Positions 5,461 to 62,550 of a stretch of 64,000 nt of DNA are shown piece after piece (the stretch's first letter is position 1; every line of letters begins with the position of its first letter). Made by a program: the position numbers and the translations under genes. Origin of the DNA: Thalia democratica (Eukaryota). The DNA lies in the NCBI GenBank assembly GCA_965202585.1, contig OZ241829.1:7564001-7628000 (forward strand). The letters run 5' to 3'. The notes under the pieces were generated by a model, which was not told the origin of the DNA, made no database searches, and worked only from the letters and a program-made list of their open reading frames with translations.

Positions 5461-6539
5461 CCATTTTGGAGTGCTTGGTTTTCACCTATTAAAGCCGTCG
5501 AACACGAGTATGGAAACAATGAGCGTGAAGCTTTCGACAGTCTGCACGACGCTGATGGGAAGTGTAACCACTTGGTCGAGGTTCTCAATGGTTTTACTAA
5601 TCACACTTTGGCTTGCCTGGTGTACCCGGTTTACGGCCCCAATCTGAGCAAGGCAATGGAGATTAATAAACAGCCGTTTAAAGCGCAAGAGGTTAGAATA
5701 ATGGCGAAACAGCTGATTGAAGCGGTGAATTTTCTTCACAAAAACGGAATGTTGCATTGCGATATCAAGCCAGAAAATATTTTATTAAACAGGTTAGTAG
5801 GACATAAGGACTTTACTTAATTATAATTTTTACTAATTAGGTGCATTTTTTACTGATCTTTATGATGTTTGTTTAAAACAACTTATAGCCGAGTTAAATG
5901 ACTTTTTTTTGTTTTTTTAACAATTTATTATACTAAAAATTTATATATATAATAATAAATCTTAAAATAGTATCTAAAGTATAACATTAAAAAAAACTTT
6001 TACTAAACAGGTTCTACTACGACCAGACTAAAATGTTTTCTTACTTTATGCCCGATATCAAACTCTGCGACCTTGGTTCTGTACGTTGGGAAAGAGATTT
6101 CAACTATGACGTCATAACAACACTTCAGTACCGCGCTCCTGACGTCATAATGGGCCATAAAATTGGGTATCCATGTGACGTTTGGTCGATCGGCTGCACT
6201 TTATACGAACTCTTCATAGGAGAAGTTCTCTTCGATGCATCGACGGTTCAGGAACTGCTCCGGATGATCCATTTTATGATAAAGAATTTTACTGGCGATG
6301 AAGTTGAAATGATAAACAGAAAACTCTCTGAAGACGGTGAAATTGTTGATGTTTTGAATGAGCAAGAGTTGGGACCCATAAAGGGCAAAACCTTGCTTTA
6401 CGAATCAAAGAAGATGCGTTCTTACACTAATAACCAAAATAGAGTTAAGTTATTGTGGAAACTAATAAATAGGATGATTGACCGAAATCCAGTATCAAGA
6501 GCAAACCTGAAAGACTTAGTTGAAGAAGAAGAAAATTAA
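5461..6539 (+). pseudogene. CLK-like kinase copy A, 5'-truncated (no Gly-rich loop found); exons 5461/5488-5792 and 6011-6539
   Basis: The open frame IKAVEHEYGNNEREAF...HCDIKPENILLNR splices (ag|gttagt ... aaacag|g) to FYYDQ...IKLCDLGS...QYRAPD...PCDVWSIGC. In-frame stops lie upstream of 5455. It could be a gene with an unrecognised upstream exon. Confidence 0.75.
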
Positions 6540-12190: not shown

Positions 12191-13069
12191 ATGCATTCAG
12201 AGCCGAAGAAAAACAGTGAGAAAGGTTTTCAATCCATAACCCGGTATGTTCCAGTATCTAACAGTTCTACAACTAATCAAAATCCTGGGGTCCAGCAAAA
12301 TAGTGTGATTGTTCCTACACTGAAGCAGTTTTCTGAACCAACAAGCAGTATAATACGCTTTGATGCATTAAGTGCTTCAACATCCTCAAATGTTATTCAC
12401 TCTAGTGGACAATATTCTACTCAAAATAATGGATCTGGAAACAGTATGATGAAGGGCGGAGTGCCTCAACCAACAAACTGTGTGATGAAAACGTCTTTAC
12501 CGAGTGGTGTTAACTGTCATCCGTCTTCTACAATTTCTTCTGACGCAAATAGCATTGCTCCATTACTTGCTGCAAGTTCTAGTGATTCGCGGTCAATAAA
12601 CACGGTTGCAAATCAAGTACCTTCTACATCAAATTTAGTTCCTATGAACTACTCGGCTAACAATGACTTGTCAAACTATGAAAGTTACATACGAAGAGGT
12701 TATCAACCGATTCAGTCCCACCCTATCGATGACGACACCACTAACCGTCTATCAATATTTCGTTTCAACCTCTTAAACTCCACATTGAACGAAGTTGTAA
12801 GAAACGAGCACACAGTTCTCAATCGGTTAAATGATATTGAACGGCAAATAAATGACAACCAAGAGGCGAATGTGAGATGTTTTAATTTGCTGAATCAGAG
12901 TGCATTTAGTATACAGAACTGTTTTGATAGACGTTTTGATGATCTTTATAAAAAGTACAAGAAATATCTAACGGTTGCATTTATTGTTGGTATAATCTTG
13001 GTTATTTTCTCTTTTGTATTAATTATAATGTCGGCTGCACAGTTGTACTATATAAATCAGCTGTTATAA
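12191..13069 (+). CDS. MHS-family copy M2, 292 aa, intact; predicted tail-anchored coiled-coil membrane protein
   Basis: Single-exon ORF starting MHSEPKKNSEK. Ser/Asn-rich middle, heptad region LNEVVRNE...FDDL, hydrophobic C-terminus LTVAFIVGIILVIFSFVLIIMSAAQLYYINQLL. Confidence 0.85.
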   Translation: MHSEPKKNSEKGFQSITRYVPVSNSSTTNQNPGVQQNSVIVPTLKQFSEPTSSIIRFDALSASTSSNVIHSSGQYSTQNNGSGNSMMKGGVPQPTNCVMKTSLPSGVNCHPSSTISSDANSIAPLLAASSSDSRSINTVANQVPSTSNLVPMNYSANNDLSNYESYIRRGYQPIQSHPIDDDTTNRLSIFRFNLLNSTLNEVVRNEHTVLNRLNDIERQINDNQEANVRCFNLLNQSAFSIQNCFDRRFDDLYKKYKKYLTVAFIVGIILVIFSFVLIIMSAAQLYYINQLL

Positions 13070-22637: not shown

Positions 22638-25600
22638 ATGTTAAGTTTCATCTCAAGCGATAGTCAGGAAGACTCGGACGATGACTTTTTCGATGAAAGT
22701 TTTTTCAAAACAACTCCAACAAAGAGACTTGATAAAGATTTGAGTAAGAATTTTATTAAACCTTATTTTTCAAAAGTAGTAATATAAAGCTAAATACAGT
22801 ACAGAGTAGAAAGTATGTACTATGAAATGGCTTAAAATTAAGACCTTAAAACTTCTTGAAAAATCACGTATAAAAATTTAAGTATGATTGATAAAGTTTA
22901 TATAAGTTGAAAAATAATCTATCAGAAGTGTCTTGTGTACAAACTTTTTACAAGATTGTTACTTTATAGAGTGTTTATTTACTTTATAAAAACTCTAAAA
23001 TTCTTTTAAAAGCCCGAAAACCAGTGTAACTGAACTGAATTTTACTATTCAAAAATAATCTCATACTGTATGAAATTAATATCATAAAATTCTGATACGT
23101 TAAGGCTTAAAGTTTGTTAAACCTTGTATATCATTTTAAGTAAGCTAACCTATTTTTTTATGCATAAAAATAAAGGAAAGTTGAATTTTTAAACCTTTAA
23201 ATGAACTAATTATATATTTTTTTTTTCAATCAAGTGCCTGATATAGTTGAAGATGTGACCGCAGCATTAAATCAATTTAAAACTGAATTTTCTGAAAGAT
23301 ACTGTCAGGAGAAGGCTGGTCCCAATTTTTCCACCAATACTTTTAGTGATGTTATGGATGAAGCAATTAAGGGTCCAAATTTAAAACAATTAGGTAAAAA
23401 GACAAATTTCAAAATTGTATTTGCTTAAAATAGTGTAGAAAATTTAAAAATAGTTAAATTTAAAACAATTTGTGATTGTGATTTCGTAATTTTAAAATAT
23501 TTCAAAAATTTATTGTTGTTGTACACAAATAACTTCTTCATTTATTTGAAATTTTTTTTTTAAATTTTTATAATAGAAATATTACTAACATACAATTTAC
23601 TTAATTAATAAAACCCCTTTCAAGTAGAACTACTGATAGTAAAATTCAAGAAATTTTGCTATAATATATTAAATACAGTTTAACTAATTAAACATACTAA
23701 TATAAATAAAATGTTTCGTTGAAGTGTTTATTTCAATACCTGAATTCTACTGTATGTAAAATATTTTAACTTTTATATTTTTATTTCACAGCAATCTACT
23801 TACACAATGAGAAGAGTATTGGTTCAAACATATTCTGTTCAGAAGTATTGTGCAATGATAAAATTTCAAAAACTTTAAATTCAAGTTTCATATGTTGGGG
23901 ATGGGACATCACAACTACTTTTAATAAAAATAAGTTTGTTGCTTTCAGTTAATTTTTGATTTACTTTTGAAATATTCATTTGTTTTTTCATAGTTCCTAC
24001 ACTTTTGACTGTTTGTTTTTTTTTTTATTTGACACCTAATTATACTTAAGAGATCTTGTTTATTTCACAATTTTACCTTTTAAGATATATTTCAATACTT
24101 TTTTTTACGATTTTGTGTTTTTATATATTTTTTAGCTATCAAAATTTGTATGCCTTTTTAAATAAATTAGTAAGTCGTTTTTATTTAATTTTTTTTTAAA
24201 TATTTTGCTCCATGTTTTATTACGATTTTACGTTGTTAATAATTTTTTCCGTGTTTGTTTAAAAGTTTTAAAACATTAAAGCTTAGAATGTTTTACTATA
24301 AAATTAATAAAAGAAAATTTTTGAAATCAAATGTAATATTTTTCCTATAGCATAACACAATTTAAACACAGGTTATTAGATTTTGCATTCAACTATTGCC
24401 ATGATCTACGTGAGGAACTTGAAGTTATAAATCAAGGGACCAATTCCATGCTTGTTTTGATAACTGGTGTTGGTGACCATTTCAAAGTTGACAAAATTCT
24501 CAAAGGTATAAGTGTTTTTTGATATTTTTAATAAATAGACAGTATTGAAGCTATATTTTTATATTTTTTAAAGTAATGATTTTAAATTATAATTTAATAC
24601 ATTTAATTTGAAAGTATGAAAACGGCATTTTAAATCTATATATATATAAGTATAAATATACTAAAAAAACTGCTTAAATGTCTATTTTTTAATAAGTTAA
24701 TAATTCAAACAGCGTTACTTTACTATGTAGATAAAAATTTACGTATAAAAAAACTATATTACTAAGCACAGAAAATATTGCAAGTAGTATAACTTTTTTG
24801 TAAAAATTATTTTCTTAACTATTTTTTTTCTAATAAATATATTAAAAATGTTGAGTTTCTTATACTAGTCACAAAATAAAAATTTTCTAAGAATTTGTAA
24901 TCAAACAATTAATTACTAAAATGTGCACTGTGTATCAAATAAAAGTTTATTAACATATTCTGTACAGTACATATTCTAAAACATTACTTGGAGTCACTGA
25001 ACAAAAATGTATTTTTTGTAGATGTTGATGATTCTAATACGGTATACGAAAGCTTAGTTAAAGCTAAGATAAAAGCTGTAAAAAGGTCAGTTAGTTAAAA
25101 TTCTCATATAAAGAAATACTTAACTTGATCATAAAAGATGTTTTTAATATATTGTTATTATAGAATAGTTTAAACTTCCGACAAAAATTTTAGTCTTTGA
25201 AAATATATAAAAACTCAAAAATTGTAGAAATAAAATACTTTTATTTAAACTTACTTGTTTTTTACAGTGTTAAGCTTGTTGTTCAGCTTGATTGTATTTC
25301 TAATTTTTACATACAAGTTTAGTTAACGATAGTTTTGCTAATATTATCAAATACAATTTTCAAACCGTTTAAAATTCATTTAAAAAGTATTCAACAGAAA
25401 CATTACCGAAATGTATGCGGAAAACTCAAAATACGTTTTGGAGGTTATGACGTCATCGGATGAAGATTACGACGTCATAAGGAGAAATTTCGAGAACACA
25501 ACGACGGGTGAGAAAGCTCAAAACATCTACCGCGTAACGAGACGCGATGACGCAATTAATGATAAAAGGGATGATGATGTATGTAGAGAGAAAATTGATG

Positions 25601-26247
25601 ATAAAATTGGTAATGAGAAAAGTAATGATGACATATGTACTAAGAAAGAATGTAATGACGTTGCTAAAGAGAAGAGTTACCATCACGCAAGCAAGGAGAA
25701 TAGAAATGATGACGTCAAAGCAGCTGATGACGTATGTGATGGGAAAAGCGATAATCTCCTACTGTTCCATGGGACCAGCTTGGAAAATTCCGTTGGCATC
25801 ATCGAGGAAGGTTTCAGGCCGTCTGAGAGGGGTAAATTCGGCCCTGGTGTCTACCTCACGGCCAGCTCAGTGTGCGCGATAGGCTACGCGATAAAAAAGT
25901 CCCTGGACAAGAAGCTCTTCGTCCCAAACAGCATTGCGTTTGGACAACAAACCCCTAAAATTATGCATTGCGTTTTCGTTAACGAAGTCTTGGAATCGGA
26001 GAAGCTGAAGGTGCTAAAGTGGAGCGACGCCGACAGCACCAAGAACCAGTTTGCAAAGTACCTGGAGATGGGCAGGATGGAGGATCTGGAGGGAGAGACT
26101 CACGATGAGGACAGCAAGGGAAGAAGGATCAGGAGCTCTCCGGCGACGCAAGCGGATGATTACGATCATTACGTTTGCTGGAAGGACTTGGTCGCTCCCA
26201 GATACTTCATTCAGTTCTACCATATTTTAACTGATGTAAAACTTTGA
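22638..26247 (+). CDS. Chimeric protein, about 484 aa: FAF1-like acidic linker + UAS domain fused to a PARP-like ADP-ribosyltransferase domain; exons 22638-22743, 23235-23393, 23792-23933, 24372-24505, 25022-25085, 25398-26247
   Basis: All five introns are GT-AG with compatible phases (1,1,2,1,2); the spliced length is 1455 nt with no internal stop. The translation includes ALNQFKTEFSERY, AIYLHNEKSIGSNIFCSEVLC and FICWGWDIT (FAF1 UAS-like), then LLFHGTS, GFRPSERGKFGPGVYL and YDHYVCW...PRYFIQF (PARP-like). The 5' end is uncertain; there are alternative acceptors at 22610 and 22657. Confidence 0.88.
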
Positions 26248-32762: not shown

Positions 32763-33615
32763 ATTATTTTCAATCGTTATATAAAATTTTTAAGGATTCG
32801 GCTTCCGTATTTTGTTTGATCTTATAAGTGTTAGCTCTCAATACTTTAGGTTCAACCTTATACATTTGTTAGACCTTAAAATGTCTTTTTATAATTGTAA
32901 TACTACTAATAAAATAGTTTTCTTAATTTAAATCTATCAACCTAGGTTGCAATTCGTCTACTATAGCAATCTTATAATTGTTAGCAAACATTACAGCGGA
33001 AAGGTTAATTATAAACAAAACGTTTCAATTTTTTTTTTTTTTAGTTGATGTAACATTAGCATTATAACAACTTTATTGTCGAGATTTTAATACAAACAAC
33101 TTATCTAATAAAAAAAAAACTCTAAAAATAGCACTTTCCACTAGAAATATTTGTATGACCATTTATCTTTAATGTAAAGGGTATTATGAGTTTAAGCGTT
33201 AACATAAGGAAATATTGATAAAATTAATTTTCATTTTGATCTAATAAAATTTAAGAGAATTTTTAACTATTTTAAATAATTAGGAATTTTTACTTTTATT
33301 AGCATGTCTATGTTACAGCTCCTAAAAGGTGGTTTACTTTCCGACATTTTAATTTTTTATGTTAATTATTTTCTTGTTTTATAGTTAGTATATAACGTGC
33401 TGATACTAGTTATTTGTTAAATTAATAATAAAAATAAAAAAACAATAACTAATTTTTTAAATATTTATTAAACACGAATAACTGAATTAACTGCTAAGGC
33501 GGTAAAAAATTAACAATGAATGACAAGCGTATAAAAAAAAAAAGAAATATAACTTATAAAAGTGACACTGAAAAAGAGTTGGATCACAATAAAGTCTGAA
33601 ATTAATTTATAAAAG

Positions 33616-34524
33616 TTATTCAGAGAAACTTAAGAAGAGCTGATTCATATAGTACAACTGTACAAAGAATAAAACAATTATTGCAATTAGAAAAACGACT
33701 TGTAACACACTTGCAATGGTTGCGCACCTTTGCGTTCTTTCGCCTTTTGCATCATCATGAAGTTTATCAAGATAGTCAAAGCGCTTGTCAATGTTATCAA
33801 AACTGTTTCGATTATCAGCTGCACTTAGATCAAGCGAATCAAAGCGACTTTCATACGTTTTGTGGTTACGGTCTACTTGCTGCTCGACTCCTTCCAATAG
33901 CGTGTGATCTGACAGCTGGTTTCTTATGACCCTGCTTAATGTGGAGTTCACACGATTGAAATCGAACATTAGCAAGTTGTGATTACTGGTGTTGGGTTCA
34001 TTGAGAATTAATGGTTTATCTCTTCCCAAGTCACTACCATTAAATCTTCTAACATATGGGTCATAAGTGTTTGAGAAACCAAAATTGTTTGAAGCACTAT
34101 TGTTTTTAGAAGCTGTTAAATCAGTACTAGCCAAGTACTTCGTAGCAGCTACACTTGTCGTAGAAGGTACTTGGTTGGTGTTATAAGGTCTTGTACCACC
34201 AAATCTTGGAGAATATGGCGGAGCAGAACTGTTTAAAGATTTTGGAATGTCAGAAGAAACTCTAGAATGTGGATAATTTTCAACACCACTCGATATTCTC
34301 ATTCCTCTACATGCCTGTTCGCTTTGTATACGATATTGTTCGTAAGCCCTTTGTTCATCAGAAGGTGTTATACTGTAGGTTGATCCGGGAAACTTCGTCA
34401 GTGTCGAATAGTTGGCACTATGGACTCCAGGATTTTGATTAGCCATAGAACTGCTAGATACTGGAACATACTGGTAAATGGATTGAAATACTTTCTCACT
34501 GTTTTTCTTCGGCTTTGAATGCAT
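33616..34524 (-). CDS. MHS-family copy M3, 302 aa, intact; predicted tail-anchored coiled-coil membrane protein
   Basis: ATG at 34524 in the same cacctgtcATGCATTCA context as M1 and M2. C-terminal TM-like segment VLQVVFLIAIIVLFFVQLYYM. Confidence 0.88.
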   Translation of the reverse strand: MHSKPKKNSEKVFQSIYQYVPVSSSSMANQNPGVHSANYSTLTKFPGSTYSITPSDEQRAYEQYRIQSEQACRGMRISSGVENYPHSRVSSDIPKSLNSSAPPYSPRFGGTRPYNTNQVPSTTSVAATKYLASTDLTASKNNSASNNFGFSNTYDPYVRRFNGSDLGRDKPLILNEPNTSNHNLLMFDFNRVNSTLSRVIRNQLSDHTLLEGVEQQVDRNHKTYESRFDSLDLSAADNRNSFDNIDKRFDYLDKLHDDAKGERTQRCATIASVLQVVFLIAIIVLFFVQLYYMNQLFLSFSE

Positions 34525-37263
34525 GACAGGTGCTTGTTTTTCAATCAAGTACAAAAGCTGTATAAATAATCATCGTTATAAAATAATTAAAAAAAAATGT
34601 TCTTACAATTGTTATGTTTGTTTATTATGTTTTTTATCTTCTTGTCACCACAGTATATACTCAATGTACTACTTAAAAAAGGCAGACCTTAAAAAGTATA
34701 CAGTTATGTCTTTAAATAATTTACAACTTACAAGTATGGCGTAGTTATTAAGAAAAAAAAACTACTTGAGATTTTATACAAAATAGTACTGTAGAACAAA
34801 TTAAAAATATGTGAATTAATCTTTGATTATTGACTATTTATTTTAAAAAAAATTCTAGAAAAAATTATCAAGCTGTTTTACTTAGATTTGTTTTGTATAT
34901 GTTACGCTAATACTAAATTTAAGAAAAAAACTTTTAGTAACTTTATATCCAAGTTTTTTTTACTTCTATATTAAATAATTTTCATTACACTTAGATTTAA
35001 ACAAAAAACAAAATTTTCTGTAAATATGATCTTAAAAATCATAATTGTTAAGCTGGCAGTATTTTCAGTATAGTAATAATAAACAGCTTTATTTAAATTG
35101 AGTTTTTAATTTTTGATGTCAACTTATGCTAGTATTTATGTTTACTGGTGATATCTACAGCTTTTAACTGTCTTACAACTGATTACAAGATACAATTCAA
35201 TATAACTTAATCATTGATTAAAATTACAACTTTGCAGTATATTTTTCATTCAAGAGACCATTAATGTAATTCTGTTATTACTTATCTAAACTTAACTTAA
35301 AAACTTTAAAGATGTTCATAATTTATAGAAAATAAAACTAAATTTTTACTTAAATGACCAAAACCGCCGTTGATAAAGAGAATAAAGTTTTAGCAAAATT
35401 TAAACTGTTTTGGTTTTTAAAACAAACGAGATAATATTCTTACAATTAAAACTAGTTTGTAATTTTTTTATTAATTAAACCATACTAATGCTTTTAAAAC
35501 TTAGTTTTTTAGCGGAAAGCATCAATAAAAGCAGTTTAGAATTAGAAACCTTTTAAGTTCAATTATTAATTACAATTGAATAACTCCTTCAATGATATGT
35601 TTGAACAATTGTACTTAAAAGTAAAAAAATCATGTATGGTACTGAGTGTGTTTTAAAATAAAAACTCAAAATAGGAAGCAATTTACACACATAACAATAA
35701 TTAATAGATTTTTTTTTGTAGTACTTACATTTTATTTACTTTTGTAGTACTTTTATAGTTATTACGGATGTTACATATATTGTGAACTTTAATTTAAGTT
35801 TGATGTTCAACTTTATAATAACCTAAAGTAGAAACACATCATAAAATACATAACTGTTGTCGTTAATTACTTCTGAAAAGACAATAGCTTAATTTTATTT
35901 GGTAAACACATGCCTACACTTATGCATAAATCTATAATCCAAGTAATACAATATAGTTTTTTAAATTTATTTTAAGTTTTTTGTAACACGTTAAATTTTA
36001 ATTCGTTTTTTTTCTTGTTATAGACATACTACTCGTTTTTAACAAAAATTAAACAACCAATCTATTTGAAATATTTAAACAAATTTCTTAGTTATACAAT
36101 CGTTGTACAATTATGATACTGATAATGAAACCAAATATTTTTTTTCAATCAATTTTGAACAAACTTAAAAATAATTGAATTTACTTATATTGCTTAAGTG
36201 TAATTTAAATTTTTCATTTACTACAAGATAAAAGTGGCTAAAGAAATAAAGTTATTTTGAAAAATTTTTAAGCTACTCTGTTAATTATACTTTTTTAGAA
36301 TGTTCTAAAGTTAGCTAAATACTTATATATGAATAAATCTAACTGAGTATTTTTTTGAAGTTTTATGACGTACAAAGCTGTGCATATTAAATATTAATAG
36401 CGTAACCAGTTACACATTTTTTCTACTACATACTTTGACAATAGCAGTTATAAAAATTTTATGTTTAGTTTTAATTACAGTGTTTTCCTAGTTTACATTG
36501 ATAGTTATTTCTTTATTAAACATTAAATGTCTTTTTGAACTGTTGTTTTTCGAACATATTTATCTAATTTATTTTTTGTATCTATAATAAATAATTTGTG
36601 TACAAAAATACGAAGAGCTAATATAAAAATTAAACATTATAGCTTTTTTTTTAACTGATTTTATTTTTTTTTTACTTTCAAGTACGGCTTTTGTAATAAA
36701 CAAGTTTTAAAAAAAAAGTGATTAAATCAAAGGCTTTAAACGCTTTCAGGAAACATATTTAAAAATAAAGTTAAAAACGACTATAGTATATCAGTATATT
36801 TGTATATTTTATGCCAACAAGTTATATGAGAAAAAAGTTTTAGAGGCTAATGAATGTTAAGTTTGGAACAAACTTATTTGTAGCATTATTTAAAGAAGCT
36901 TGAAAATGTATCTGCAGTTGTATCTTGTAAGCAACTAAATGCCAAAGTATGTTAACAAGCATGTCAAAAAAGAAAATAACATTTTAAGACAGCCTACTGT
37001 TTTAATTTTATTACTTTCGTTAGTCAAAAACAAATTTTTTTGCATAAAACCTGTAATACAACTTAACTGAAATACTTTTTAGTACTACATATAACTGTTA
37101 TATACAGCAGTACTACAACACTTCGTTATCTTAATAACAAGTAAATTAAATTCTAATAAGTTGCAGTAATTATAGATTTTTTTATTACCAACAGTTATTA
37201 ATTTTCACTACTAAACAAAGTGTAACAAAGTAATAAAATATTAGAACTTTACATAAAAAAAAG

Positions 37264-38700
37264 ATGTCTAAATCAAGTCAAGTAAATAAAAACAATTTAA
37301 TTGGAAACAATCTGGGATCCAAATACAATGTTCTCAGCAAACTTGGAGAGGGAACTTTCGGAACTGTATATAAGTGCCTTAATATCACAACAAATCAATA
37401 CATTGCTATTAAGGCAATGAACCCCAAGCATGCAAAAGACGAGTTGGATGCTTTAAAGAGTCTGAAAGACGCTGATGGAAAGTGTAACTACTTGATTGAA
37501 ATACTTGAATGGTTTGAGGAAGATAGTTTAGCTTTCCTCGTTTACCCACTCTACGGACCTAATACAGAGGTAGCTATGGAAAAAAATAATCAACCGTTTA
37601 AGATGCAAGATGTACAAATCATGGCTAAACAGCTGATTGAAGCGACAAATTTTCTTCACAAAAATAAAATGTTGCATACCGATATCAAGACAGCAAATAT
37701 TTTATTAAACAGGTTAATTGTTTCATGTTATATTTTTTACTCTTTAAATTACATTTGTATAACACAGATAACAACTTCTTTTGTTGCCATTATACGCCTT
37801 ACTAAATAATATTTGTTTTTGTACTATACACTATACAAATATTTATTAATAATTAAATATTATTGATTTAAAGATATGTAGTTAACTTACATTTTTATTA
37901 TACAGGTATTACTACGACAAGTCGAAAAATGATTTTTACATGAAGCCTGACATCAAGTTGTGCGACCTTGGCTCGGTGTTCTTTGAAGAAGAATTCGACT
38001 ATGACGTCATAACAACACTTCAGTACCGCGCTCCTGACGTCATAATGGGTCACAAGGTTGTTTAAGTATATTACTAAGAAAGTTAACAACTTTACATAAA
38101 CAAGCAACTTATTATAACTAAATATCTTTAACAGAGTAAGCTAATACAACAAGTTAATTTTCAAAAGAAATATAACCTTATAAACAAAGTACATGTATAT
38201 TTTGCCTTGTAATTAAAATATACTTTATACATTTAAAATTAGTTTTATTTCAACAGATCGGGTATCCATGCGACGTTTGGTCGATCGGCTGCACTTTGTT
38301 CGAACTTTTCACAGGAGAAACGCTTTTCAAGGTGGATACTGTACAGGAACTTTTCAGGAAGATCCACTTGATGATTGATCCTTTTACTGAACAAGAAGTT
38401 CAAAGGATTAACTTGAAATTGACCGAAGATGATAAAAAGAATAGGATTGGTCAAAAACTGACTGAAGATAAGGAAAATGTAGATATTTTGAAAGAGCCAG
38501 AGTTTGCAAAAATAAAAGGCGAAGTTAAGAAGATAGAGTCTTATTTTGATAAGAACGACAGTGGAGAAAAGGATTTGTTTGAATTGATTGTTCGCATGCT
38601 AGATGTAAATCCAGTAACAAGAGTGAAACTTAAAGACTTAATTTTAACAATTACAATTAGTAATATCGATTTTAAATTATCAAATTTTCTTAAAAAGTAG
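37264..38700 (+). CDS. CLK/LAMMER-like CMGC kinase copy B, 347 aa, intact; exons 37264-37712, 37906-38056, 38257-38700
   Basis: Motifs LGEGTFG, IAIK, HTDIKTAN, DLG, YRAPD and PCDVWSIGC. The GT-AG introns are phase-compatible (1044 nt spliced). Confidence 0.93.
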
Positions 38701-40114
38701 ATTAATTAGGTTTTTCACCTCAATTAAAATAACAGTTCATTTGTATGTTTTATATTCTTTCATATTTTAGAATACGATTCATTTTTACTTTTACTTCCTA
38801 CCATTTTGCTATATTTATCTAGACATAAATTTTTGACGTGATAATAACAGGCATAACTAAGTGTTTTGTAGTACTTAACGATAAACTCTTAAATTTCAAT
38901 TAATACACTTAGTGTTTTACTGTAACTTTTGTTACATAAAATTCATACTTTTTGCGGACATTGTAGTAAAGTTCAAGTTGGTCAAAACTACACTGAAGGG
39001 ACTCTAACTCAAAATTAATACAATATCATAAGATAAGAAAAATTATGCTAGCAACGTTTGATATTTGTCGAAAAATGTTGAAACATATATTGGCACATAA
39101 AAAAGAAAAATAATTAGAAAAGTTACTAACTTCCAGGAATATCAAATTAATAGAGATTATGGTAGAAAGATAAACAATTATATGAATAGTTTGTAACTAC
39201 TGAGAGTACTATAAAGAAAATCTATATAAATATTATCTTTCATAAAAAACTAATAAAAAAGGTCAATTCAGTGAAAAGAACCATAGTAATGTCAGTCTTA
39301 TAAGAATTTAAGTAGTCCTACCAAATACATGATATAGGTACGTCAAATTACAAAAAAAAACTGAAATTATATAAATTAAAGTTTAAAATGTATAAAAAAT
39401 AGTCCGATTTCAGTGCGTTTTTAAATTATTATAATGCTGTATTAATATAAAACATGTTTAACAATGTATTGTGCTATTATTTCGCTGTGGATATGAAGAG
39501 GTGATTGTAATGACAGCTTTTAAACCTTATCAGTATCAAAAACACATTTTGCTAACATATATTATATTTTGCTTGAAAACATAATAAGTTCTTATAAAAA
39601 ATTGATTTATTGCAAATGATGTATAATTAAGTAAAGTATTGTTTTTATAATCTAAATGAAGTTAAACAAAAACTCGTATGTTTTTAAGTTCTGTGCCACA
39701 ATAAACTTTTCCGACTGATTTTTAGGTCTTATCGAAATAGCTTTTATAACAACTATAAAATAGTTATTTTTAATTATTGATTTACTAAGGTTTAACTTAT
39801 ACTGTATATAGTATATATATATTATAATAATTATGAAAAAAAGATTGTTTATAAATGATTGTGTTAATGACTAAGTTTTATTTTTGAAAGTTGCTTAAAA
39901 AGTTAGGTAAAAGGAACTCATGTACAAAAAATTGTTTGAACTAAACACTGCAGATACAGTCTATTGCGTGTCCAGAACTTTAAACAGAAAAAATCGATTA
40001 ATTTTTGTTATTATGTTAAAAATACTTCCTTTTTAAAAAAGTTTATACTTAGATTAAAAAAAAATAGTTTTAAACAGTTCAGCTATAGAAATATCTAATA
40101 TTAATATTATATGA

Positions 40115-46239: not shown

Positions 46240-46963
46240 TTAGATAAGTTCTTCCAGTTTCACTCTTGTTACTGGATCTGGATTTAGCATGCGAACAATC
46301 AATTCAAACAGATCCTTTTCTCCAGCGTCGTTCTTATCAAAATAAGACTCTATCTTCTTAACTTCGCCTTTTATGTATACAAACTCTGGCTCTTTCAAAA
46401 AATCTATTTCATTTTCATCCTTTGACAACTTTTGACCAACCTTCTTCTTTTTATCATCTTCGGTCAATTTCAAGTTTATCCTCTTGATTTCATGTTGAGT
46501 AAATGGATCAATCATCAAGTGGATCATCCTGAAAAGTTCCTGAACAGTATCCACCTTGAAAAGTAATTTTCCTGTGAAAAGTTCGAACAAAGTGCAGCCG
46601 ATCGACCAAACATCGCATGGATACCCGATCTGTTTAAATAAAACTAATGTTAAATTTATAAGTTTAATTACAAGGCAAAACATACAAGTACTTGGTTTAT
46701 AAGAATATACTTCTTTTGAAGATAATGGCTTACTCTTTTAAAGATATTTACTTATATTAAGTTGCTTGTTTAAGTAAAGTAGTTTACTTACTGAGTAATC
46801 TACTTAAACAACCTTGTGGCCCATTATGACGTCAGGAGCGCGGTACTGAAGTGTTGTTATGACGTCAAAGTTGAATTCTTCCTCCCAGTACACAGAGCCA
46901 AGGTCGCACAATTTGATGTCAGGCTTCATGTAAAAATCATTTTTCCACTGGTGGTAGTAATAC
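46240..46963 (-). pseudogene. Kinase copy C, exon 1 lost; exons 46963-46813 and 46629-46240 are open
   Basis: Near-identical to exons 2-3 of copy D. Homology ends inside intron 1 at about 47085, where the satellite starts. Confidence 0.92.
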
Positions 46964-47085: not shown

Positions 47086-48407
47086 TTGAAATTTGAGTTA
47101 AATTACAAACGATATTAATTAAAACTGCTTAAAGCACGTTTTTTAATAAAATTATACTGTTCATTATAAATATAAAGTTTAATTTAGACCTTAAGTTAAA
47201 CGAACTATGAGTTACCCCATAATTGAGTATCACAAAATATACTTGAAATTTAAGTTAAATGACAAACGATATTAATTAAAACTGCTTAAAGCACGTTTTT
47301 TAATAAAAATATATTATTCATTAAAAATATAAAGTTTCATTTAGACCTCAAGTTAAACGAACTATGAGTTACCCCATAACCGAGTATCACAAAATATACT
47401 TGAAATTTAAATTAAATTACAAACGATATTAATTAAAACTGCTTAAAGCACGTTTTTTAATAAAAATATACTATTCGTTATAAATATAAAGTTCATTTAG
47501 ACCTCAATTTAAACGAACTATGAGTTACCCCATAATCGAGTATCACAAAATATACTTGAAATTTAAGTTAAACTACAAACGATATTAATTAAAACTGCTT
47601 AAAGCACGTTTTTTAATAAAATTATACTGTTCATTATAAATATAAAGTTTAATTTAGACCTCAAGTTAAACGAACTATGAATTACCCCATAATCGAGTAT
47701 CACAAAATATACTTAAAATTTAAGTTAAATTACAAACGAGATTAATTAAAACTGCTTAAAGCACGTTTTTTAATAAAATTATACTGTTCATTATAAATAT
47801 AAAGTTTCATTTAGACCTCAAGTTAAACGAACTATGAGTTACCCCATAATTGAGTTTCACAAAATATACTTGAAACTTAAGTTAAATGACAAACGATATT
47901 AATTAAAACTGCTTAAAGCACGTTTTTTAATAAAGTTATACTGTTCATTATAAATATAAAGTTTAATTTAGACCTTAAGTTAAACGAACTATGAGTTACC
48001 CCATAATCGAGTATCACAAAATATACTTGAAATTTAAGTTAAATTACAAACGATATTAATTAAAACTGCTTAAAGCACGTTTTTTAATAAAATTATACTG
48101 TTCATTATAAATATAAAGTTTCATTTAGACCTCAAGTTAAACGAACTATGAGTTACCCCATAATTGAGTTTCACAAAATATACTTGAAACTTAAGTTAAA
48201 TGACAAACGATATTAATTAAAACTGCTTAAAGCACGTTTTTTAATAAAATTATACTGTTCATTATAAATATAAAGTTTAATTTAGACCTTAAGTTAAACG
48301 AACTATGAGTTACCCCATAATCGAGTATCACAAAATATACTTGAAACTTAAGTTAAATTACAAACGAGATTAATTAAAACTGCTTAAAGCACGTTTTTTA
48401 ATAAAAT
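47086..48407. repeat. 157-bp tandem satellite, about 8.4 units
   Basis: Unit starts at 47086, 47243, 47400, 47556, 47713, 47870, 48027, 48184 and 48341 (partial). Confidence 0.97.
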
Positions 48408-48414
48408 ACAAATA

Positions 48415-48970
48415 GAGACCTTATAAGACCAACCAAGCACCTTCTACGACAAATATCGCTCCTACAAAGTACTTGGCTAGTACTGATTTAACTGCTTCTA
48501 GAAAAAATAGTACTTCAAACGTTTTTGGTCCTACACGCAGTTATGATCCACCTGTATCGAGATTTTTCGGAAGTTACCTTCAAAAAGAACCTAACACCAG
48601 TAATTACAACTTGCTTATGCTCGATTTCAATCGTGTAAACTCCACATTAAGCAGGGTCATAAGAAACCAGCAGTCAGATCACACGCTGTTGGAAGGACTC
48701 GAGCAGCAAGTAGACGGTAACCACAAAACGTATGAAAGTCGCTTCGATTCGCTTGATCATATTGCAGCTGATAGTCAAAACCGTTTTGATGAAATTGTAA
48801 AGCGCTTTGACTATTTTGATAAACTTCATGATGACGCAAAAGGCGAAAGAACGCAAAGGTGCGCAACCATTGCAAATGTGTTACAAGTCGTTTTTCTAAT
48901 TGCAATAATTGTGTTATTGTCTGTACAGTTGTACTACATTAATCAGCTCTTCTCAAGCTTCTCTGAATAA
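48415..48970 (+). pseudogene. MHS-family copy M4, 5' half lost
   Basis: Homology begins abruptly at gagaccttataagacc (mid-gene) next to the satellite. The frame is open to SSFSE*, but there is no native ATG. Confidence 0.9.
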
Positions 48971-60200: not shown

Positions 60201-62020
60201 AATAAAACATGTTAGCAAAAGGTGTTTTATAAACTGATAAGCTTTTAAAGTTATCAATACAATGAACCTTTTCATATTAAAAGCAAATGAAAAAATAAAT
60301 GATAACTATTGAAAAGTATATTTTTTAACATGTTTCTGACTAATATGACATTATACTAATTCAATAATGCTATGAATTCGGACTTATGTTGACGTGTTTT
60401 GAACTAAACTCTTTTGAAAACCTTTATGTGAGTTGACGTTTGTTTATCAGGTTCACTAATAGTATGTATTGGGTATGATGATGCAATTTCTTATAACTAA
60501 AGTTTTGACATTTATTCTCGTAATATAAACAAACTACTGAGTTAATTTTTTTAGTTTGTTATAGAGTTGTTTTTTTATTAGAGATAGTTTATTGAGATAG
60601 ATTAACAATATTATAATGCTATTAGCTGTTAAAAATTATTTATTTATAAAATAAGTTTAACTTTATTTTTAACATTCTGTTAAGTTAACAATATTTTTAT
60701 AAAAAGATTTTTTTAATAGACAATTTATGTTTCAATCCTTTTTGACAAGTATCATAAAAAGGAAATAACTAGGATATTTTACTGTTTGTCAGTTCAGACC
60801 CTTCAATTAATTTTTGAATAACTTAAACTTTATTACAATATCAGCAAAAATTATGACTTTTTTAAAAGTCTTAATTAGTTACTACAAACCGTCTGTTTTA
60901 TTAGTTGAAAAATTGAAGTTTACCGTAAAATATTACAACTCACTTTATTGTTCTTATTATTATTATATCAAGCTTTTATATTTAAGTAAATGATAAAAAT
61001 TTTAGGAAGTCAAAGTGCATAATAAATAGTAGTGTTAAGATATTGAAAAAAAATATGCAAATGAATTACTATTTTTATTGAGGTTATTTTTAAAGTAATT
61101 AAAAATTCAAACATTCTACTTTTTTAACAGCTTTAAAAATTCAGATCAGATAAAAAAACTAATAATTATTTAGATAAGTTCTTCCAGTTTCACTCTTGTT
61201 ACTGGATCCGGATTTAGCATGCGAACAATCAATTCAAACAAATCTTTTTCTCCAGCGTTGTTCTTATCAAAATAAGACTCTATCTTCTTAACTTCGCCTT
61301 TTATGTATACAAACTCTGGCTCTTTCATAAAATCTATTTCATTTTCATCCTTTGACAACTTTTGACCAACCTTCTTCTTTTTATCACCTTCGGACAATTT
61401 CAAGTTAATCCTTTGAACTTCATGTTGAGTAAAAGGATCAATCATCAAGTGGATCATCCTGAAAAGTTCCTGTACAGTATCCACCTTGAAAAGCGTTTCT
61501 CCTGTAAAAAGTTCGAACAAAGTGCAGCCGATCGACCAAACATCGCATGGATACCCGATCTGTTTAAATAAAACTAATGTTAAATTTATAGATCCTAGTT
61601 TAATTACAAGGCAAAACATTCAAGTACTTGGTTTATAAGAATATACTTCTTTTGAAGATAATGGCTTACTCTTTTAAAGATATTTACTTATATTAAGTTG
61701 CTTGTTTAAGTAAAGTAGTTTACTTACTGAGTAATCTACTTAAACAACCTTGTGGCCCATTATGACGTCAGGAGCGCGGTACTGAAGTGTTGTTATGACG
61801 TCAAAGTTGAATTCTTCCTCCCAGTACACGGAGCCAAGGTCGCACAATTTAATGTCAGGCTTCATGTAAAAATCATTTTTCCACTGGTGGTAGTAATACC
61901 TGTTTAACAAAATGTAAATAAACTACATATTATTTAATCATTAATATTTGAATATTAATAAATATCTGTATAGTTTAAAATAGAATAATAAATATTTCTT
62001 TAGTAAGACGTATAATGGCA
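57247..62020. repeat. Segmental duplication block, paralog of 42315-47085
   Basis: Colinear match including the SPT5 fragment and kinase exons 2-3. Confidence 0.97.
58083..59014 (+). pseudogene. SUPT5H: Second copy of the SPT5 KOW2-KOW3 fragment; exons 58083-58218, 58401-58495, 58860-about 58950
   Basis: Same exon lengths and same disabling lesions as 43138-44062. Confidence 0.85.
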
Positions 62021-62550
62021 AAAAAAAAGAAGTTGTTATCTGTGTTATACAAACGTAATATTAAGTGTAAAAAGTAGCACAAAACAATTAACCTGTTTAA
62101 TAAAATATTTGCTGTCTTGATATCGCCATGCAACATTTTATTTTTGTGGAGAAAATTTGTCGCTTCAATCAGCTGTTTTGCCATGATTTTTACTTCTTGC
62201 AATTTAAACGGTTGATTATTCATTCTTATTGCTTCTTCTGTATTAGGTCCGTAGAGTGGGTAAACAAGGAAAGCTATATTACCCTCCTTAAACCATTCAA
62301 GTATTTCAATCAAGTAGTTACACCTTCCATCAGCTTTTCCTAAGCTCTTGAAAGCTTTCAGCTCATTAGTTGCATTAGTTGCATGTTCTGGATTTATTGC
62401 CTTGATAGCAACGTTTTGATTGGTTGTAATATTTAGGCATTTGTATACAGTTCCGAAAGTTCCCTCTCCAAGTTTACGGAGAGATTTGTATTTAGATCCA
62501 AGAATTTTTCCGATGAGGTCGTTTTTATTTCCTTGACTTGATTTAGACAT
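61170..62550 (-). CDS. CLK/LAMMER-like kinase copy D, 332 aa, intact; exons 62550-62093, 61899-61749, 61559-61170
   Basis: Motifs LGEGTFG, VAIK, HGDIKTAN, DLG, YRAPD and PCDVWSIGC; 999 nt spliced with GT-AG introns. Confidence 0.93.

Follow-up and report, generated by a model that had tools for sequence, protein, structure and literature searches.

Why do a protein kinase gene and a gene for a putative membrane protein lie head-to-head again and again along one stretch of the genome of Thalia democratica? The stretch in question is a 64-kb window, C5:7564001-7628000 (C5 being contig OZ241829.1), whose coordinates we count from its first letter, in a genome of ~800 Mb that is AT-rich (26% G+C) and whose genes are spliced. 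It holds kinase genes A to D, divergent relatives of the CLK family, and the genes M1 to M4, which belong to a family of predicted tail-anchored proteins. An initial annotation of the window had read their repeated pairing as a co-duplicated two-gene unit with coupled fates on a bidirectional promoter. Upon mapping the copies base by base over 264 kb of contiguous DNA (the window plus 200 kb of flanks), we found that one part of this interpretation stood, namely a block of two genes that was duplicated together, while coupled fates, a shared promoter, a working relationship between kinase and M and pairing in related species were left unsupported and several counter-examples emerged. We consider it probable that the locus is a birth-and-death array of segmental duplications, in which physical linkage accounts for the pairing.

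The arrangement is seen in M3 and kinase B, with the DNA between them divided according to what other copies retain of it:

33616-34524, minus strand: M3, an intact, intronless gene of 302 residues from the first ATG (coding sequence 33619-34524, stop codon 33616-33618)
34525-36040, no strand: M-proximal upstream DNA, which stays with M or M fragments in units without a kinase; candidate M promoter region
36041-37064, no strand: central spacer, kept in the closest copies only and not common to the pair of kinase D and M5
37065-37263, plus strand: kinase-proximal DNA, ~200 bp present in all kinases of the B/D type; candidate core promoter and 5' untranslated region (UTR)
37264-37712, plus strand: kinase B exon 1, from the N-lobe through the HTD catalytic loop, with a Pkinase match and CLK1/CLK3 as best structures
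37906-38056, plus strand: kinase B exon 2, with the DLG motif and the activation segment
38257-38700, plus strand: kinase B exon 3, the C-lobe

As annotated, the two genes are divergent and both intact, with unbroken reading frames and ATGs 2,739 bp apart. Other units align to a ~6 kb block around them (window 33262-39714), and they have diverged to a similar degree on the M side and the kinase side (identities of 84.5%/85.5%, 84.5%/83.9% and 75.2%/75.6%), which bears out the proposal that kinase and M were duplicated together. Homologous flanks were common to all head-to-head pairs, and together with the matching divergence they indicate that the pairs descend from one arrangement and not from independent associations. 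The repeated pairing is far above chance, yet its repetition is not independent. We propose that an ancestral block of ~6 kb, containing a divergently transcribed CLK-like kinase and M, was multiplied by unequal crossing-over, the older A-type kinase and M2 paralogues being copied along with it, and that most copies were then broken by deletions, inversions and frameshifts in a process of birth and death. The repeated pairing would be the inheritance of one arrangement.

The other copies in and next to the window show how variable the state of these genes is:

61170-62550, minus strand: kinase D, intact, 332 residues (exons 62093-62550, 61749-61899 and 61170-61559)
65034-65984 (window-equivalent, beyond the window end), plus strand: M5, intact, 316 residues, the partner of kinase D
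46240-46963, minus strand: kinase C, exons 2 and 3 alone (46813-46963 and 46240-46629), with exon 1 and promoter deleted
47086-48407, no strand: 157-bp satellite, 8.4 copies, replacing the spacer and both 5' ends between kinase C and M4
48416-48970, plus strand: M4, a 5'-deleted remnant, residues 112-302
5486-6539, plus strand: kinase A, an A-type paralogue that has lost its start codon and glycine-rich loop
7794-8795, plus strand: M1, an M pseudogene spread over at least four reading frames
12191-13069, plus strand: M2, an M paralogue that has diverged to 37-43% identity and retains an intact reading frame

Five kinases of the B/D type retain all three exons in the 264 kb, and they differ in what has become of their M partners:

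Kinase B (C5:7601264): intact; M partner M3, intact
Kinase D (C5:7626550): intact; M partner M5, intact
Kinase at C5:7668410: 7-nt frameshift; M partner reduced to a 60-residue stump
Kinase at C5:7711851: intact; M partner reduced to a 60-residue stump
Kinase at C5:7719525: intact; M partner broken over at least four frames

Of the four intact kinases, then, two no longer have an intact M partner. As five intact M genes conversely have no B/D-type kinase (C5:7242747 and four units on the unplaced contig C281), the claim that the two genes share their fates did not survive. In these kinase-less units the upstream homology stops at the equivalent of 36040, and the sole kinase neighbour of the unpaired M genes is a 5'-truncated A-type copy, placed tail-to-tail.

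The dead pairs in the window were described correctly: kinase C and M4 are head-to-head and both 5'-deleted, with exons 2-3 and residues 112-302 left, and kinase A and M1 are both disabled, the former without ATG and glycine-rich loop and the latter in at least four frames. The jointly truncated form of kinase C and M4 recurred in five copies in the 264 kb, and kinase remnants with the identical breakpoint numbered at least 19 genome-wide, the breakpoint corresponding in every copy to position 37785 of the kinase B unit. A breakpoint common to at least 19 copies indicates a single deletion that was later amplified, in agreement with the suggestion that C and M4 were lost in one event; the dead C/M4 pairs represent one spacer deletion, filled by the satellite and amplified after both genes had been killed. 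Kinase A has a history of its own: its homology to a full-length A-type copy begins at window 5486, 433 bp of that copy having been replaced, and A-type kinases share ~60% amino-acid identity with kinase B and lack intron 2 (exons 2 and 3 are fused), forming a separate, older subfamily.

The DNA between the genes argues against a single bidirectional promoter. By the usual definition, the transcription start sites of a bidirectional pair are separated by at most 1,000 bp (PMC2648788). The kinase and M genes resemble such pairs in being divergent and in keeping their arrangement through duplication, but their ATGs are 2.46-3.86 kb apart over the copies and the central spacer is not conserved. 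Kinase D and M5 form an intact head-to-head pair, 2.46 kb apart, with M5 just beyond the window end. The annotation had credited kinase D with the same intergenic DNA as the other copies and did not mention M5. Between the two intact pairs (M3/B and M5/D), homology extends over ~1.15 kb beside M and ~0.2 kb beside the kinase, whereas the middle is unrelated. The upstream regions of kinases B and D were 74-78% identical within 200 bp of the ATG and ~50% farther out, which is the background for this AT-rich DNA. M, for its part, is still preceded by ~1.5 kb of its own upstream DNA in units without a kinase, and ~800 bp of the M-proximal upstream DNA is recognisable upstream of M2. In the two intact pairs we found no conserved regulatory DNA shared between kinase and M, the conservation being gene-proximal only. 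Conserved gene-proximal DNA around an unrelated centre suggests that two separate proximal promoters, of ~1-1.5 kb at M and ~0.2 kb at the kinase, fit better than one shared promoter. On the M side, a non-coding block of 590 bp (35103-35692), located 0.6-1.2 kb from M in the upstream direction, shares 65% identity with the DNA preceding an M homologue in a related species (L031:2464-2997; also L032 and L033), making it a candidate regulatory element or 5' UTR exon.

What do the two genes encode? An AlphaFold2 model of M3, built from ten family members, predicted disorder for residues 1-184, a stretch in which S, T, N and P abound, and one continuous helix for residues 189-301 (predicted local distance difference test, pLDDT, 77-92). 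Hydropathy in a 19-residue window peaked at residues 270-288 of 302 with a mean of 3.06, against a maximum of 0.27 elsewhere, and the resulting membrane segment ends 14 residues before the C-terminus; neither an N-terminal signal nor a further hydrophobic segment was apparent in the hydropathy profile. Such a lone hydrophobic segment near the C-terminus suggests that M3 is tail-anchored, and the model predicts a coiled-coil-like stalk in front of the anchor. M would be inserted post-translationally, with the disordered N-terminal part in the cytosol. Tail-anchored coiled-coil proteins are a general class that includes, for example, SNAREs and mitochondrial fission factor. M resembles this class in its C-terminal anchor, the long helix leading into it, the disordered N-terminal part and the lack of a signal sequence, but unlike SNAREs it matches no SNARE or other Pfam family: M3 had no Pfam match at E up to 0.1, no SNARE motif was recognised before the anchor at that threshold, and the protein atlas gave no usable match.

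Beyond close species from marine metagenomes, no relatives of M were found in a word-indexed search of 5.8 billion proteins, in a profile search, or with phmmer run exhaustively over 1.84 billion representatives, and M appears to be a lineage-restricted orphan family. Nothing on the M family or on its pairing with a kinase was found in the literature. Comparing the intact copies and the homologue of a related species, we obtained ratios of nonsynonymous to synonymous substitution rates (dN/dS) of 0.17-0.49 for the C-terminal stalk and anchor, which are under purifying selection, and of ~0.9-1.0 for the N-terminal half. The pattern as a whole indicates that M is a real, constrained gene whose cytosolic arm drifts freely or diversifies.

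Kinase B comprises three exons with GT-AG at every border and encodes 347 residues without a stop. It lacks the stop codon of its paralogues (window 38647-38700) and so gains ~18 extra residues, whereas kinases C and D and other B/D-type copies terminate in ...KLEELI or ...KLKDVI. It matched Pkinase in Pfam (E = 9.7e-24), and among solved structures CLK1, CLK3, CLK4 and CLK2 came out on top for both N-lobe and C-lobe, with CLK1/CLK3 as best match at E = 1.6e-19 for exon 1 and E = 2.5e-15 for the whole C-lobe, the latter taken from an A-type copy. The likeness to the CLK/LAMMER kinases (CLK1, CLK3; 1z57, 2eu9) lies in the glycine-rich loop, the AIK lysine, the HxD loop with its K and N, and the D of DFG. 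The differences are equally clear. No RS repeats precede the glycine-rich loop, which starts at about residue 27 and leaves only ~20 residues before it, in place of an N-terminal RS domain; the EHLAMMERILG signature is degenerate, with scattered residues only in the corresponding stretches of kinase B (QELFRKIHLMIDPF) and kinase A (QELLRMIHFMIKNF); HRD is replaced by HTD or HGD, DFG by DLG and APE by APD; and the genes form a lineage-specific array of short three-exon copies. We therefore regard the kinase as a putative divergent CLK-like enzyme consisting of the catalytic domain only. AIK, HTD-IK-TAN and DLG are kept in kinases B and D and in those at C5:7711851 and C5:7719525, leaving the catalytic residues intact, and the enzyme is probably active. 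The dN/dS among intact kinases was 0.35-0.52, a sign of purifying selection.

All outside relatives of the two families came from marine metagenome assemblies, largely from Tara Oceans. No kinase was present within 2.9-3.5 kb upstream of M homologues on four short contigs of uncertain orthology (L031 and L036-L038; 46-48% identical). A 24-kb scaffold (L041) carries a ~59% identical kinase homologue of uncertain orthology, whose flanks of 10 kb (upstream) and 4 kb (downstream) contain no M, and a short contig (L043) likewise has none in the 3.8 kb preceding a kinase of 60% identity, again of uncertain orthology. These negatives weakly argue against pairing in related species. In the related species, three contigs carry another M-like C-terminal fragment ~0.7-1.1 kb beyond the M homologue (L039:1876-2037, L037:4666-4806 and L038:4547-4651), which suggests that tandem duplication of M predates this genome or recurs.

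The scale of the surrounding array sets the frame in which the pairing has to be weighed. A genome search with M3 returned 137 matches and one with kinase exon 1 returned 87, nearly all of them located at C5:6.89-7.73 Mb or on the unplaced contigs C281, C600 and C787. The window thus lies in an array of ~840 kb with more than 100 copies and fragments of both families, in which equal match scores return at tandem periods of 15.1, 19 and 22 kb and, over the mapped 264 kb, units occur in either orientation. Birth-and-death or ampliconic tandem arrays are a general class in which neighbouring genes are co-amplified. This array resembles them in its multi-gene units of 15-22 kb, its many broken and few intact copies and the joint amplification of linked genes, and differs from known ones in its cargo, a CLK-like kinase with an orphan tail-anchored protein.

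Pairing frequency, which had been put forward as a check genome-wide, cut both ways when counted on C5: 10 of the 11 B/D-type kinases that keep exon 1 face the 5' end of an M gene (six intact, three stumps and one broken), but a kinase of this kind lies opposite only 10 of the 30 M 5' ends. The first of these figures, together with the fact that six of the seven intact M genes on C5 are paired, weighs against linkage as the whole explanation and leaves room for some selection keeping the pair together. Further points on this side are that long 5' UTRs or introns within them could bring the transcription starts closer than the ATGs, that the related-species contigs are short and of uncertain orthology, and that the base-level reading covers 264 kb of the array, the kinase states elsewhere being taken from search coordinates. 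With identical tandem copies counted once, the tally comes to about four paired lineages and one or two intact lineages that are unpaired, which is too few to show selection for pairing. We also considered an enrichment of intact M among paired copies on C5 (six of seven intact versus four of 23 broken) and set it aside, as the counts are mostly tandem copies of single events and the four unpaired intact copies on C281 weaken it further.

Could the two genes nevertheless form a functional module, the kinase phosphorylating the cytosolic part of M or docking through it, with the head-to-head order kept for co-regulation? Beyond the facing of nearly all B/D-type kinases by M, every intact pair is divergent at 2.5-3.6 kb, both genes of the intact pairs are under purifying selection, and the N-terminal part of M consists to 57% of S, T, N, P, Q, G or Y and contains S/T-P and R-x-x-S/T sites, the types that CMGC kinases generally use (CLK specificity). 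Yet the very region proposed as substrate evolves at a dN/dS of ~1, two intact kinases sit opposite a defunct M, a B/D-type kinase is missing beside five intact M genes, the central spacer is not conserved from one intact pair to the other, the related-species contigs show no pairing, and all pairs have a single origin, so that we regard this explanation as unlikely. The same doubt applies to its more specific form, a young lineage-specific signalling module in which M would recruit the kinase to the membrane, or the kinase would phosphorylate the fast-evolving arm of M, with the intact pairs as the selected working copies; this, too, is improbable on our assessment. The caveat already attached to the annotation, that linkage alone may explain the pattern, is the better reading.

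A selfish or conflict-driven amplicon, such as a germline drive or toxin-antidote system with selection acting on copy number itself, might account for the very high copy number, the many near-identical copies with equal scores at periods of 15-22 kb, the occurrence of units in both orientations and the confinement of the family to one lineage. However, most copies are dead fragments that were amplified as readily as the intact ones, and neither protein carries a toxin or nuclease signature in Pfam, making such an origin very improbable. That the pairs are an assembly artefact of collapsed or falsely expanded repeats is an idea prompted by the several tandem units with identical scores and by C281, C600 and C787, which carry the same units. 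Against it, the region is present in independent DNA runs from two studies, and the copies differ by 3-25% and have distinct breakpoints. A search for RNA runs covering the locus returned none; the three runs examined there were DNA-like, with contigs covering introns and spacer, and the conserved gene parts were stacked 10-40 times deeper than the spacer, as fits a real multi-copy family; an artefact is accordingly extremely improbable. A joint near intron 2 in these runs, which could be taken for splicing, stems from paralogues without intron 2.

On present evidence, the locus is a commonplace birth-and-death cluster of genes, unusual in its cargo. It provides a clear case in which repeated pairing resembles functional evidence and instead testifies to shared descent in a segmental-duplication array. 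The cargo would comprise two components not described before, an orphan tail-anchored coiled-coil family and a catalytic-domain-only offshoot of the CLK kinases, of which this pelagic marine animal has dozens of copies. Should the two genes act together after all, they would exemplify a module of kinase and partner that arose and multiplied in a single lineage.

Several observations concern the M2-type genes and the DNA beside M. M2 had been annotated as unpaired; this was mistaken in that M2-type genes are regularly found ~3.4 kb downstream of M genes, with further cases at window-equivalent 69380-70255 and at C5:7493405, 7512344 and 7728154. The M2 of the window is the sole one of six M2 copies in the 264 kb without an internal stop. 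The 300 bp directly downstream of M3 (33262-33561) recur downstream of M2-type copies. In kinase-less units an inverted copy of this segment directly abuts the DNA upstream of M, at the position equivalent to 36040, and this inverted join marks a recurrent rearrangement junction.

Other genes of the window and copies away from the array complete the picture. A PARP-like gene at window 25411-26247 has a second copy 151 kb downstream, at C5:7740789-7741622, with 91% amino-acid identity, which indicates that it, too, is part of the large duplicated landscape. One M copy lies off the array contig, at C8:7100143-7100937, with an open frame of 285 residues that is 75% identical over residues 51-312; the genome searches with M3 and kinase exon 1 returned no kinase match nearby. 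The same searches placed no M genes beside the clusters of single-exon CLK-like kinase reading frames at C6:13.44-13.68 Mb, 18.9-19.4 Mb and 30.97 Mb and on C181. These frames encode 331-424 residues, 38-47% identical to kinase B exon 1, and they point to an expansion of CLK-like kinases in this genome that is wider than the array.

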